A DNA stretch of 64,000 nt from Schizochytrium sp. TIO01 (GCA_004764695.1 SMSO01000032.1:1-64000), one strand, 5' to 3'; shown: positions 25,865-30,510, counted from the first letter of the stretch. Notes: a model not told the origin generated them from the sequence alone. Program-made: numbers and translations.

Positions 25865-28800
25865 TTATTCAAAAATATAAGGGCCTAGACATCCCAATGC
25901 TTCACTAAAGGCAACATTTGCAGCTTCCAACATATCAAGCTCTACTTTCTGCGCAGCAATATAATCCTCTTTCGAGCTCTGCTCACCATTACTGCTAGCA
26001 AGCAGACTCTGTCCAGAACGACTGAGTTTCACTGAAGATGGCATAGAAAGTGCATTGTTTACAGCATGTATACAACCAAGCTCACGAGAGATCTGCTCAA
26101 GACGTGTCCTTCGTGTCTTTGCACAATAAATCTCTTCATTCAAGTCGAGCTCCTCGCGCATTTCATTCATCCCCCGGGACATTCTAGTATCAGTAAAATC
26201 CAAATGACATCAACTCCGTTCGTCAGTTGACAATTTCACGTCATCAAAAGGCACCCACAGTATTGCCAGTACAGTTTCATTTCGTCGCTGATACTATCGT
26301 GCTCTCTGTTAGATCCACACTCAACCAAACAAACAATTCCACAACAAACTTGCAATGGCGCGAAGAAAGACATCGGCAAAACAGCACACTAGACAACCCA
26401 CCACGCAACCAACCAACCAAGTCTCATGCACAAACAAGTCCACGAGCTACTGCTTAGACAACTTACTCAAGTGATTTCAGCGACCGGTTCTCTTTCAGCG
26501 CCGCAGCCACTGCCTTAGCGCCCTCTGAGCCGATATCGTTGCGTTGAAGACTGTCGATTGGATTGAATGATGGCAAGCAATACATTACACGTTACATATT
26601 ACAATAGATGCACGCATGCATGCATGGACATGAGTGATCTAGGTTGGCTTTCAGGATTTCATCTTTGTTGTGTTGTCATTTTGCTCTTTGTTCGATGGAT
26701 GTATACTCACTCACACAGACAACTTATCCATCCATCCATCCATCCATCCATCAAACAAACAAACAAGAGATTGCATAAACTTGCAAAACAACACCGACCC
26801 ACCCACCAAACAACAAACCAAGCATCATGTACAAACAAGTCCACGAGCAGCGCTGTTGCGTAGACAACTTACGATAGTGATGTCAGCGACCGGTTCTCTT
26901 TCAGCGCTGCAGCCACTGTCTTGGCGCCCTCGTCGCCGATCTGGTTGCGGGAAAGACTGTCGATTTGATTCAATGATGGCAAGCAATACATTACATTGCA
27001 ATGCATTACATTGGATACATGCATGGACGTGAGTGATCTAGGTTGGCTTTCACCATTTATCTTTGTTGTGTTGTCATTTTGCTCTTTGTTCGATGGATGT
27101 ATACTCACTCAAACAGACAACCCATCCATCCATCAAACAAACAAGCGATTGCATAAACTTGCAAAACAACACCGTCCCACCCACCAAACAACAAACCAAG
27201 CATCATGTACAAACAAGTCCACGAGCAGCGCTGTTGCGTAGACAACTTACTTGAGTGATGTCAGCGACCGGTTCTCTTTCAGCGCCGCACCCACTGCCTT
27301 AGCGCCCTCTGAGCCGATATTGTTCCACCAAAGACTGTCGATTTAATTGAATGATGGCAAGCAATACATTACACGTTACATATTACAATAGATGCACGCA
27401 TGCATGCATGGACGTGAGTGATCTAGGTTGGCTTTCAGCATTTATCTTTGTTGTGTTGTCATTTTGCTCTTTGTTCGATGGATGTATACTCACTCAAACA
27501 GACAACTCATCAAACAAAAACCGATTGCATAAACTTGCTAAACAACACCAACCTAAGCACCATTTAACAAACTAAGCATCATGTACAAACAAGTCCACGA
27601 GCAGCGCTGTTGCGTAGACAACTTACTTGAGTGATGTCAGCGACCTGTTCTCTTTCAGCGCTGCAGCCACTGTCTTGGCGCCCTCGTCGCCGATCTGGTT
27701 GTTTCTAAGACTGTCGATTTGATTCAATGATGGCAAGCAATACATTACATGTTACATGTTACAATAGATGCACGCATGCATGCATGGACGTGAGTGATCT
27801 AGGTTGGCTTTTAGCATTTATCTTTGTTGTGTTGTCATTTTGCTCTTTGTTCGATGGATGTATACTCACTCAAACAGACAACCCATCCATCCATCAAACA
27901 AACAAGCGATTGCATAAACTTGCAAAACAACACCGTCCCACCCACCAAACAACAAACCAAGCATCATGTACAAATAAGTCCACGAGCAGCGCTGTTGCGT
28001 AGACAACTTACAATAGTGATGTCAGCGACCGGTTCTCTTTCAGCGCCGCAGCCACTGCCTTGGCGCCCTCGTCGCCGATCTGGTTGCCAGAAAGACTGTC
28101 GATTTGATTGAATGATGGCAAGCAATACATTACATTGCAATGCATTACATTGGATACATGCATGGACGTGAGTGATCTAGGTTGGCTTTCGGCATTTACC
28201 TTTGTTGTGTTGTCATTTTGCTCTTTGTTCGATGGATGTATACTCACTCAAACAGACAACTCATCCATCCATCAAACAAACAAGAGATTGCATAAACTTG
28301 CAAAACAACACCGACCCACCCATCAAACAACAAACCAAGCATCATGTACAAACAAGTCCACGAGCTGCGGTGTTGCGAAGACAACTTACTATAGTGATGT
28401 CAGCGACCGGTTCTCTTTCAGCGCCGCAGCCACTGCCTTGGCGCCCTCGTCGCCGATTTTGTTGTAGGAAAGACTGTCGATTTGATTGAATGATGGCAAG
28501 CAATACATTACACGTTACATATTACAATAGATGCACGCATGCATGCATGGACGTGAGTGATCTAGGCTGGCTTTAACCATTTATCTTTGTTGTGTTGTCA
28601 TTTTGCTCTTTGTTCGATGGATGTATACTCACTCAAACAGACAACTCATCCATCCATCCATCAAGCAAACAGGCAATTGAACAGAATTTCAAGACAACAG
28701 CGACCGACCCACCAACCAACAAAGCAAGCCTATTGTACGAGCAAGGCCACGAGCTACTGCTTAGACAACTTACTTGAGTGATGTCAGCGACCGGTTCTCT

Positions 28801-30510
28801 TTAAGCGCCGCAGCCACTGCCTTGGCGCCCTCTGAGCCGATCTCGTTGCTTCCAAGACTGTCGATTTGATTCAATGATGGCAACCAATACATTACATGTT
28901 ACATATTACAATAGATGCACGCATGCATGCATGGACGTGAGTGATCTAGGTTGGCTTTCGGCATTTACCTTTGTTGTGTTGTCATTTTGCTCTTTGTTCG
29001 ATGGATGTATACTCACTCGAACAGACAACTCATTCATCCATCAAACAAACAAGAGATTGCATAAACTTGCAAAACAACACCGACCCACCCATCAAACAAC
29101 AAACCAAGCATCATGTACAAACAAGTCCACGAGCTGCGGTGTTGCGTAGACAACTTACAATAGTGATGTCAGCGACCGGTTCTCTTTCAGCGCCGCAGCC
29201 ACTGCCTTGGCGCCCTCGTCGCCGATACCGTTGCCAGAAAGACTGTCGATTTGATTGAATCATGGCAAGCAATACATTACACGTTACATATTACAATAGA
29301 TGCACGCATATATGCATGGACGTGAGTGATCTAGGTTGGCTTTCACCATTTATCTTTGTTGTGTTGTCATTTTGCTCTTTGTTCGATGGATGTGTACTCA
29401 CTCAAACAGACACCTCATCCATCCATCAAACAAACAAGAGATTGCATAAACTTGCAAAACAACACCGACCCACCCACCAAACAACAAACCAACCATCATT
29501 TACAAACAAGTCCACGAGCTGCGGTGTTGCGTAGACAACTTACGATAGTGATGTCAGCGACCGGTTCTCTTTCAGCGCCGCAGCCACTGCCTTGGCGCCC
29601 TCGTCGCCGATCTGGTTGTTAAAAAGACTGTCGATTTGATTCAATGATGGCAAGCAATACATTACACGTTACATATTACAATAGATGCACGCATGCATGC
29701 ATGGACGTGAGTGATCTAGGTTGGCTTTTAGCATTTATCTTTGTTGTGTTGTCATTTTGCTCTTTGTTCGATGGATGTAGACTCACTCAAATAGACAACT
29801 TATCCATCGATCCATCCATCAAACAAACAAATGAACCAAAGATTGCATAAACTTGCAAAACAAGAACGACAAAAGCAACACCGTGCAAATAAAGCAAGCA
29901 AGCAAGCAAGCAAGCAAGCAAGCAAGCAAGCAAGCAAGCAAGCAAGCAAGCAAGCAAGCAAGCAAGCAAGCAAGCAAGCAAGCAAGCAAGCAAGCAAGCA
30001 AGCAAGCAAGCAAGCAAGCAAGCAAGCAAGCAAGCAAGCAAGCAAGCAAGCAAGCAAGCAAGCAAGCAAGCAAGCAAGCAAGCAAGCAAGCAAGCAAGCA
30101 AGCAAGCAAGCAAGCAAGCAAGCAAGCAAGCAAGCAAGCAAGCAAGCAAGCAAGCAAGCAAGCAAGCAAGCAAGCAAGCAAGCAAGCAAGCAAGCAAGCA
30201 AGCAAGCAAGCAAGCAAGCAAGCAAGCAAGCAAGCAAGCAAGCAAGCAAGCAAGCAAGCAAGCAAGCAAGCAAGCAAGCAAGCAAGCAAGCAAGCAAGCA
30301 AGCAAGCAAGCAAGCAAGCAAGCAAGCAAGCAAGCAAGCAAGCAAGCAAGCAAGCAAGCAAGCAAGCAAGCAAGCAAGCAAGCAAGCAAGCAAGCAAGCA
30401 AGCAGGTGATCGGGCGAGCAAGCAGGTGATCGAGCGAGCGTGTTAACTTACCCTAATGTTGTAGCGCCATTCTGAAGCTCTTCAAGGGCATCGACAACCG
30501 CATACCACAT
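25865..30510 (-). CDS. 11-exon RI/NLRC3-type LRR protein (~377 aa): short N-cap, nine 28-aa LRRs each on one 84-nt exon, ~105-aa orphan helical C-terminus
   Basis: Exons in transcription order: 30510-30452 (MWYAVVDALEELQNGATTL), 29627-29544, 29242-29159, 28857-28774, 28473-28390, 28095-28012, 27710-27627, 27334-27251, 26956-26873, 26550-26467 and 26183-25865. All donors are GTAAGTT and all acceptors are CAG/TAG, all phase 2. The joined CDS is 1134 nt and open, with consensus xLxxNxIGDEGAKAVAAALKENRSLTSL. Confidence 0.92.
26400..29890. repeat. Tandem array of nine exon+intron cassettes (unit 376-406 bp, mostly 385)
   Basis: Spacing of successive exons is 406, 378, 376, 385, 378, 384, 385 and 385 bp. 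Intron bodies are near-identical (e.g. GTGAGTGATCTAGGTTGGCTTT...TGTTGTCATTTTGCTCTTTGTTCGATGGATGT). Confidence 0.98.
29892..30404. repeat. Perfect (AAGC)n/(GCTT)n tetranucleotide microsatellite, ~128 units, in intron 1 of the LRR cassette gene
   Basis: Read directly; 513 bp uninterrupted. Confidence 0.99.

Follow-up and report, generated by a model that had tools for sequence, protein, structure and literature searches.

An array of one-repeat exons upstream of the rDNA in Schizochytrium sp. TIO01 is a leucine-rich repeat gene of a large, spliced and expressed family with five hypervariable codons per repeat

We studied a 64,000-nucleotide stretch of DNA from Schizochytrium sp. TIO01 (GCA_004764695.1, SMSO01000032.1:1-64000), called here the window, and in it a minus-strand gene at 25865-30510 made of leucine-rich repeats (LRRs). 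An initial annotation, drawn up from the sequence alone, had read a tandem repeat of about 385 bp with the look of a satellite as a gene with one ribonuclease inhibitor (RI)-type LRR per symmetric exon; this was borne out, and a start codon, splice sites and a stop codon were all found. Between 26467 and 29627 on the minus strand there are nine segments, each exactly 84 nt long and each encoding one LRR, and all nine exons lie where that annotation had placed them, with intact boundaries. With a start exon (exon 0) and a last exon, these nine cassettes make up the gene model of an LRR-only protein of about 378 amino acids. The features of the gene, in order of transcription, are:

30452-30510, minus strand: start exon (exon 0), 59 nt; ATG plus 18 codons plus two bases; MWYAVVDALEELQNGATTL; donor GG/GTAAGT
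29628-30451, minus strand: intron 1; its 3' part (~265 nt) is like the cassette introns and its 5' part is a (GCTT)128 microsatellite at 29892-30404
29544-29627, minus strand: LRR cassette exon 1; LFNNQIGDEGAKAVAAALKENRSLTSL, ends TC; LRR_6 match of 23.5 bits; RI-like matches in PDB
29159-29242, minus strand: LRR cassette exon 2; LSGNG...
28774-28857, minus strand: LRR cassette exon 3; LGSNEIGSEG...; 5' edge 28857 joined to an exon 3' end in contigs
28390-28473, minus strand: LRR cassette exon 4; LSYNK...
28012-28095, minus strand: LRR cassette exon 5; LSGNQ...
27627-27710, minus strand: LRR cassette exon 6; LRNNQ...
27251-27334, minus strand: LRR cassette exon 7; LWWNNIGSEG...; 5' edge 27334 joined to an exon 3' end in contigs
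26873-26956, minus strand: LRR cassette exon 8; LSRNQ...
26467-26550, minus strand: LRR cassette exon 9; LQRNDIGSEG...SLKSL, ends GA; 5' edge 26550 joined in contigs
25865-26183, minus strand: last exon, 319 nt; one base plus 105 codons plus stop; acceptor AG at 26185-26184
26744-29812, no strand: 385-bp tandem repeat (exon plus intron unit); 8 (8.0) copies with 88% matches in Tandem Repeats Finder

The nine cassette exons share the borders ACAG/84 nt/GTAAGT (9/9), with ...CGACAG on the 5' side and GTAAGTTG on the 3' side, and every one has a phase-1 layout of one base, 27 codons and two bases. The consensus cassette translates as L-x-x-N-x-I-G-[D/S]-E-G-A-K-A-V-A-A-A-L-K-E-N-R-S-L-T-S-L, and the codon split by each intron consists of the two terminal exon bases and the invariant first T of the following exon. 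The residues listed in the initial annotation were reproduced exactly, in transcription order: F,S,G,S,S,R,W,S,Q at position 7, N,G,S,Y,G,N,W,R,R at position 8, Q,G,E,K,Q,Q,N,Q,D at position 10 and S,F,N,Y,F,N,N,S,E at the split codon. The final E of the split codon requires splicing to 26183, a joint that is present in contigs assembled from sequencing runs. The eight internal introns measure 292-322 nt and are nearly unchanged in alignment; the intron after exon 9 opens like the others and then diverges up to the AG at 26185-26184.

Exon 0, whose DNA begins ATG-TGG-TAT and ends TTA-GG before GTAAGT (30510-30452), translates into the helix half of an LRR. The same ~59 nt, donor and microsatellite precede the first cassette in family members at C25 and C33, where an ATG also opens the reading frame in exon 0, and the ~59-nt end of exon 0 is kept 5' of the arrays at at least 38 other loci. 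The (GCTT)n tract directly after the intron-1 donor is thus a feature of the family, with ~10 units at C25, ~37 at C33 and 128 in the window, and its differing length could affect splicing or transcription of single copies. No further minus-strand LRR exons were found between the microsatellite and 34.3 kb; LRR-like strings in this interval turned out to be plus-strand exons of an adjoining ROCO gene. The segment C14:66973-81789 is 100% identical to window 21300-36130 (offset ~45.66 kb), and includes the ROCO gene as well as the nine-cassette gene with its unique 5' flank and the edge of the rDNA; this twin arose very recently by segmental duplication, or else a single region has been assembled two times.

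The repeats belong to the RI-like class, with a period of exactly 28 amino acids and a match to the family model: exon 1 by itself scored 23.5 bits with Pfam LRR_6 (PF13516; cut-off 23.4) and exon 9 scored 20.0 bits. In phmmer searches against PDB a single exon matched repeats of ribonuclease inhibitor (1DFJ), NOD2 (5IRM) and NLRX1 (3UN9), and further matches were NLRP5 and the axonemal RI-like LRR proteins DRC5, RSP15 and LRRC34. The window exons have in common with RI- and NLR-type proteins the 28-residue repeat LxxLxLxxNxIGDEGAxxLxxALxxNxxLxxL; unlike in other RI-like LRRs, they are near-clonal, vary in five positions and occupy one exon of exactly 84 nt each, whereas ribonuclease inhibitor itself is built from 57-residue exon units. 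In RI-like LRRs the x positions of LxxLxLxxNx make up the beta-strand/loop binding face.

The last exon matched no Pfam family, and its tail gave no usable hit in the ESM Atlas and no match with Foldseek against PDB. A sequence search of 1.84 billion representative proteins returned five relatives of the tail, one of them a 250-amino-acid protein with diverged RI-type LRRs followed by the same tail. In the structure model (pLDDT 74) residues 2-46 and 71-104 are helical and 50-66 disordered, and the tail is predicted to form a family-specific helical hairpin. Exon by exon, Pfam revealed no signalling or death domain (TIR, NACHT/NB-ARC, CARD etc.) in the window gene, no signal peptide or membrane span was evident in the translations, and no ROC or COR lies between exon 0 and the stop, where there are just LRR exons and the Pfam-less tail.

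The window gene has a large number of relatives. A BLAST search of the 64-Mb genome with one 462-bp unit gave at least 379 matches, at ~90-100% identity. A genome-wide count of sister arrays, which the initial annotation had proposed, gave 1005 occurrences of a 39-nt exon core with up to 3 mismatches (0 for a reversed-pattern control) and 101 copies of the last exon, nearly all open and each just 3' of an array on the same strand. The family therefore consists of about 100 genes built from about 1000 cassettes, and the locus is not the special single one it had been taken for but one of about 100 such rDNA-linked genes. The LRR-only arrays sampled had 9, 12 and 14 units. The coding structure is intact throughout: in 150 non-redundant cassettes from about 20 loci (~15% of those in the genome) the 84-nt length, AG/GT sites, phase 1-1 and open frame were preserved in all 150. 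At the four most variable codons, 37 stops would be expected from base frequencies and none was seen in a diversity sample of 122 non-redundant cassettes from 16 arrays.

Evidence of splicing came from assembled contigs of three public runs with three organism labels (G, E and B). The exon 5' ends 26550, 27334 and 28857 were joined to exon 3' ends, at 29544 or, with three different letters, at 29547; runs X15 and X16 also contained a joint between a cassette with the ending ...TGA and 26183, where the last exon is predicted to begin; and loose contig ends linked an exon-0-type exon to a cassette start. In X16 the exon bins were 100-1000 times deeper than the intron bins. No intronless exon-exon junction was found in the genome with up to 2 mismatches, which rules out processed DNA copies as the source of the spliced contigs and means that the joints come from spliced RNA. 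Spliced forms, the absence of which had been named as grounds for dropping the initial reading, thus occur, and their joints coincide exactly with the predicted splice sites. At three joints the variable letters correspond to adjacent genomic cassette pairs (C13, C31/C19/C33), and the joint ATC/TCTTTCT in X16 is fitted, among the 150 sampled cassettes, only by window exon 1 to exon 2 or by the C14 twin. The family is therefore expressed, and the data are compatible with expression of the window copy.

We then located the variation. In the window it is confined to exon nucleotides 5-10, 14-16, 23-25 and 82-84 plus a few singletons. In the 122-cassette sample, nucleotide diversity (pi) over 301 intron columns had a mean of 0.058, a median of 0.038 and a maximum of 0.554; the scaffold of the exon gave 0.042 over all sites, 0.043 at first and second codon positions (replacement sites) and 0.042 at four-fold sites. 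Values were 0.66-0.73 at exon nucleotides 5-8, 14, 16 and 82-83 and about 0.5 at the Asp/Ser codon (nt 23-25). The 15 hypervariable nucleotides had a mean diversity of 0.565 versus 0.058 in introns (Mann-Whitney p = 5e-11). At the protein level, variation falls on residues 5 (encoded by the split codon), 7, 8, 10 and 13 of the motif L-T-S-L-x-L-x-x-N-x-I-G-x; the four variable positions of LxxLxLxxNx described initially were confirmed, and a fifth had been overlooked, the Asp/Ser codon at nt 23-25, in which all three bases differ. Variable sites stand at both exon edges with a conserved intron between them, which argues against a local mutational hot spot.

By the Nei-Gojobori method, codons 2, 3 and 5 had nonsynonymous (dN) and synonymous (dS) divergences of 1.17 and 0.76, and the scaffold 0.040 and 0.056. 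The comparison of dN/dS with intron divergence, proposed as a check in the initial annotation, thus gave a clear excess at the variable codons (dN 1.17, dS 0.76 versus 0.04-0.06). Near-invariance of the scaffold even at synonymous sites had also been reported; the scaffold is indeed homogenised together with the introns, but a special synonymous constraint was rejected, because four-fold (0.042), replacement (0.043) and intron (0.058) diversities are similar, which means that the whole unit is homogenised. The last Leu codon ends in a synonymous base, nt 82, that varies as much (pi 0.66) as the split codon after it and is in near-perfect linkage with that codon (exon nt 80-84; for example 29544-29548 in the window): CTC-AA occurs in 45, CTT-GA in 27 and CTA-TC in 24 of the 122 cassettes. 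Selection at the protein level would not by itself be sufficient to account for the variability of nt 82; hitch-hiking within protected tracts of very short length or multi-base replacement would explain it. Given the high synonymous change, the signal is one of retained old diversity or multi-base replacement and not of a classical dN/dS far above 1; the variable codons form islands that withstand homogenisation and whose diversity is old or multi-base, beyond what faster point substitution would give.

At the variable positions 88% of the residues are S, N, D, G, Y, R, E, Q or K, as expected of exposed, binding-type positions, and LRR homology together with this composition places the variable residues, by prediction, on the beta-strand/loop face. 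Among the 122 cassettes there were 117 distinct combinations at the five sites. Linkage was strong between codons 2 and 3 only, and weak for 2-5 and 3-5.

The scaffold and introns are ~94-96% identical across loci, in agreement with the homogenisation first suggested from the window. Introns from one array had a p-distance of 0.055 and those from different arrays one of 0.059, and 80 of 105 cassettes (76%) had their nearest neighbour in another array; the last exons of the same genes were just 64-85% identical in protein. A recent duplication has left two arrays of 4976 bp, one at C31:3.16 Mb and the other at C19:19-24 kb. They differ at 14 of 3967 sites in introns (0.35%), at 6 of 828 sites in the scaffold, and by two swaps of complete triplets between common variants: in cassette 6, ATC for TGA (nt 82-84), and in cassette 11, GAC for TCA (nt 23-25). 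Equal distances within and between arrays, cross-array neighbours and triplet swaps all indicate exchange of units between loci. On the simplest reading, near-identical cassettes convert one another over short tracts, which shows only where donor and acceptor differ, with diversity kept by selection at the variable codons. The same process of conversion and selection has been described for the WD40 repeats of Podospora het-d, het-e and nwd (PMC1805685), and the exon shuffling reported in Ectocarpus ROCO genes comes close to it (PMC3341825).

The same cassettes also occur in ROCO genes. At C35, cassettes with the same introns lead through a modified end cassette and a ~110-nt intron into an in-phase open frame of 837 amino acids with Roc (67 bits), COR-A (44 bits) and TIR_2 (50 bits) domains; the matches to the array span about 5.9 kb, an estimated 15 units or so. 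Several further ROC-COR paralogs lie directly 3' of cassettes. The window itself has a separate ROCO gene, head to head with the LRR-only gene:

32472-36133, plus strand: ROCO gene
32472-32555, 32621-32704, 32788-32871, 33132-33215, 33274-33357, 33617-33700 and 33899-33982, plus strand: seven phase-1 LRR exons of 84 nt
34250-36133, plus strand: open frame of 627 amino acids with Roc (32.9 bits) and COR-A

Each of its seven exons encodes one diverged RI-type LRR, and its introns are short and unrelated. Unlike in the 850-870-amino-acid paralogs, no TIR was found in the 627-amino-acid frame. The gene is 33-36% identical to the closer paralogs, among 28 matches in all. Seven 84-nt LRR exons in such a gene mean that the design of one exon per LRR is old in the lineage; in the 385-bp unit this design has been homogenised recently.

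The position of the gene in the genome is equally regular. In the window a complete 18S-5.8S-28S ribosomal DNA (rDNA) unit occupies 16590-22108 on the minus strand, co-oriented with the LRR gene, whose stop is ~3.75 kb and whose cassettes are 4.4-7.7 kb upstream of the 18S edge (22108). A last exon was located 1.6-3.8 kb upstream on the same strand in 33 of 40 scored 18S copies, and a first look at the genome gave 106 candidates for 18S and 107 for the last exon; nearly every rDNA unit of the genome carries such an LRR gene. The spacing between last exon and 18S falls into discrete classes of about 1.6, 3.05, 3.3, 3.7 and 9.1-9.4 kb, the first of which goes with a diverged tail subtype (~44% identical). 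These classes suggest several module types, perhaps matching other published repeat groups.

This arrangement has a published counterpart. In Aurantiochytrium limacinum the universally subtelomeric rDNAs are flanked by LORE-TEARS (Collier et al., bioRxiv 10.1101/2023.06.15.545109; Curr Biol 2023), of which Group 0 has about 9 units of about 385 bp, usually upstream of 18S, and was published as non-coding spacers (bioRxiv 10.1101/2023.06.15.545109). The window array agrees with Group 0 in period (385), copy number (9 cassettes), position and orientation, with the rDNA transcribed away from the array, and differs in that its units read as spliced protein-coding LRR genes. It is very likely a Group 0 LORE-TEARS array, matched by its published description and not by sequence. 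The present assembly, of 37 pieces with some above 9 Mb, is not the published Aurantiochytrium one. The thraustochytrid origin that had been deduced from the sequence fits this subtelomere layout. LRRs are unmentioned in the LORE-TEARS paper, as LRR genes are in the Aurantiochytrium proteome and mirusvirus papers, and we found no literature on LRR families of thraustochytrids.

Other features near the rDNA were as follows. Beyond it, in a stretch of lower G+C (0.34-0.41), there are 5S and three tRNA genes at 9339-9457 (plus), 13951-14024 (plus), 14789-14859 (minus) and 15781-15895 (minus); the rDNA is transcribed toward the start of the piece. No telomere repeat was found at the window start, where the sequence is coding-like, so the rDNA unit of the window may be internal and not the last before a telomere. 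A 51-bp tandem repeat at 320-754 (8.5 copies, 90% matches) lies in this coding-like sequence and encodes a 17-amino-acid repeat (DRESSSEHASHPE-like). Internal pairs of LRR gene plus rDNA that face each other are present at C6:1157008-1196877, C30:5483514-5516872, C13:5674199-5713321 and C33:1920590-2040361. In the published karyotype, chromosomes measure 1-4 Mb and carry rDNA at their ends only; either the assembly joins chromosome ends at the facing modules or this strain has internal rDNA modules.

Among known diversified systems, one of the closest is that of the LRR-ROCO genes of the brown alga Ectocarpus, which have one LRR per exon and undergo exon shuffling (Zambounis et al. 2012, PMC3341825; PMC11378527). 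The resemblance, already remarked on in the initial annotation, is real, as identical cassettes run in frame into ROC-COR-TIR at C35. Both organisms are stramenopiles; in both, each LRR has a symmetric exon of fixed length (9/9 in the window, 150/150 in the family), exons are exchanged or duplicated both inside a locus and from one locus to another, variable sites fall in the LxxLxLxxN segment, and the ROC-COR family is involved (here through C35 and the neighbouring gene). Here too the variable codons exceed introns and scaffold in diversity, and homology suggests that they face the ligand. The Ectocarpus exons, however, are of 72 nt (24 amino acids) and encode plant-specific-type LRRs, whereas those described here are phase-1 exons of 84 nt (28 amino acids) and RI-type; exon and intron are amplified jointly as a 385-bp unit ~95% identical genome-wide; the window gene lacks a GTPase and encodes only LRRs and an orphan helical tail, and the TIR is in its ROCO relatives; and about 100 genes are tied one-to-one to rDNA units.

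Repeats of high internal conservation are also known in fungal NOD-like receptors (NLRs), as in Podospora het-d, het-e and nwd (Paoletti et al. 2007, PMC1805685; Chevanne et al. 2010, PMC2873952; Dyrka et al. 2014, PMC4986451). These share with the present family concerted evolution within and between loci, hypervariability of about four surface codons per repeat, variable repeat number and reshuffling of units among family members. They differ in fold (WD40, ANK or TPR, with the repeats inside one exon, against LRRs with an intron for each repeat), and the window gene has no NACHT/NB-ARC, a subtelomeric rDNA-linked location and no repeat-induced point mutation (RIP). The variable lymphocyte receptors (VLRs) of lamprey and hagfish resemble it in a conserved LRR scaffold, variable concave-face residues and hundreds of genomic cassettes. 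VLR cassettes, though, are unspliced donor fragments with which an incomplete gene is completed by somatic copying, and the proteins are secreted or glycosylphosphatidylinositol (GPI)-anchored with LRRNT/LRRCT caps; here there are complete germline genes with introns, RI-type repeats and no signal peptide. The likeness to lamprey VLR modules drawn initially does not extend to somatic assembly, to which nothing points: a start codon, GT/AG sites at each cassette and a terminal stop exon are all present, instead of an incomplete gene with donors devoid of splice signals.

Taken together, about 100 germline LRR genes with selection-diversified codons probably constitute an innate recognition repertoire. 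A diversified germline repertoire is supported by the data; a receptor function is something we infer from the pattern of variation and the TIR-bearing relatives. We propose that recombination and short-tract gene conversion among arrays would hold scaffold and introns ~94-96% identical, that selection for diversity would shield five codons (5, 7, 8, 10 and 13 of LxxLxLxxNxIGx) from homogenisation, and that conversion would reshuffle the stored codon variants, so that nearly every cassette carries a different combination. The LRR-only proteins of ~378 amino acids would probably be intracellular, bind variable ligands through the beta-strand/loop face and work beside or upstream of the ROCO-TIR relatives in an innate, germline-encoded system.

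Several points weigh against this explanation. The binding-face exposure of the variable residues is a prediction from LRR homology and composition. Synonymous change is high in the variable codons too, including nt 82, and a scaffold dN/dS of 0.71 indicates weak purifying selection. Signalling domain, signal peptide and membrane span are all missing from the window protein, which is why receptor can be only a proposed label. The RNA label of the runs is a guess for three of four. The contigs map to many cassettes at once and ~15% of the cassettes were sampled, so that it is expression of the family that they demonstrate, and that of the window copy is a possibility compatible with them. Lastly, 5' of the last ~47-59 nt of exon 0 the window copy and its C14 twin are unlike the rest of the family, with the window ATG two codons downstream of the family ATG; given this unique sequence, the promoter of the window copy may have been replaced.

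These last observations lead to the possibility that the family is functional and the window gene and its twin are silent or dying copies, which lost the family 5' region and whose own promoter is inactive. The family-shared sequence is limited to ~59 nt before intron 1 and what lies upstream is unique to C31 and C14, the ATG is at a different codon from that of family members, and the intron-1 microsatellite is much expanded (128 units versus about 10 and about 37). The open frame, splice sites, stop and in-frame ATG are nevertheless intact, and the joint that among the sampled cassettes fits only window exon 1 to exon 2 occurs at depth in X16, which leaves a silent window copy a serious possibility but a doubtful one.

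A second alternative accepts a real protein family and gives it a role other than recognition, as RI-like scaffolds or regulators (axonemal, nucleolar or of GTPases); the variable positions would then stem from causes other than selection by ligands, for instance from a need to avoid homotypic pairing or aggregation of near-identical repeats, or to suppress recombination. Axonemal DRC5, RSP15 and LRRC34 are among the best single-repeat matches in PDB, the window gene has no signalling domain, and its tail is a plain helical hairpin without known relatives. Diversity some ten times the intron level (0.565 versus 0.058) exactly at the LRR binding-surface positions, about 100 paralogs, and cassettes shared with TIR-bearing ROCO genes are difficult to reconcile with such a role, and the same signature in fungal NLR repeats and Ectocarpus ROCO LRRs has been read as that of recognition domains (PMC1805685, PMC3341825). 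We consider a non-recognition role unlikely.

Programmed somatic diversification, similar to that of VLRs or to antigenic variation, would involve regulated, high-rate copying of cassettes or their variable codons from array to array during clonal growth, perhaps with one or few subtelomeric copies expressed, and would make sister cells different. The supply of about 1000 donor-like cassettes in symmetric phase-1 exons, the triplet swaps between duplicated arrays, the near-free assortment of variable codons and a subtelomeric rDNA-linked position, as in families that switch expression, would all suit it. Every array examined is, however, a complete spliceable gene and not an incomplete gene accompanied by donors; just two swaps in 60 variable codons, against 14 intron changes, have accumulated since the duplication, which fits ordinary germline conversion; and contig junctions come from several loci at once, so that expression is not obviously exclusive. 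Such a programme appears very improbable. Finally, a non-coding structural repeat, in which 385-bp subtelomeric spacers serve chromosome-end or rDNA maintenance and the LRR frame is an amplified relic, is the published reading of arrays with the same period, copy number and position, and agrees with the tight rDNA linkage, the rDNA-like genome-wide homogenisation and the similar variation of scaffold replacement and four-fold sites, but is scarcely credible in view of 150/150 cassettes intact in length, splice sites and frame, 0 stops versus 37 expected, conserved start and last exons, spliced joints absent from genomic DNA, variation at the canonical LRR x positions and cassettes in frame with ROC-COR-TIR.

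We thus favour the innate germline recognition repertoire. A bolder extension of it, which we offer as a long shot, is that the LRR-only and ROC-COR-TIR genes form one recognition repertoire with specificity codons under active reshuffling through mitotic short-tract conversion among chromosome ends, in which the LRR-only proteins would be exchangeable sensors or decoys for the TIR relatives, e.g., against mirusviruses. If this were true, clonal lineages would differ in repertoire, and there would be a third, intron-bearing route of diversification beside V(D)J and VLR assembly.

The results very probably turn a published 'non-coding' class of chromosome-end repeats of a model thraustochytrid into a large expressed gene family, which would change how its subtelomeres are to be annotated and understood. 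They also extend the design of one exon per repeat, homogenised scaffold and hypervariable surface beyond brown-algal ROCOs and fungal NLRs to a new setting, RI-type LRRs in a heterotrophic protist, where the design is unusually clean, with ~1000 cassettes that are ~95% identical including their introns and concentrate their diversity in five codons. The cassettes are tied to ROC-COR-TIR modules, in a lineage with persistent mirusviruses. Culturable and assembled from telomere to telomere, it offers a tractable system for studying how unicellular eukaryotes build and renew recognition repertoires and whether subtelomeric recombination serves this purpose.

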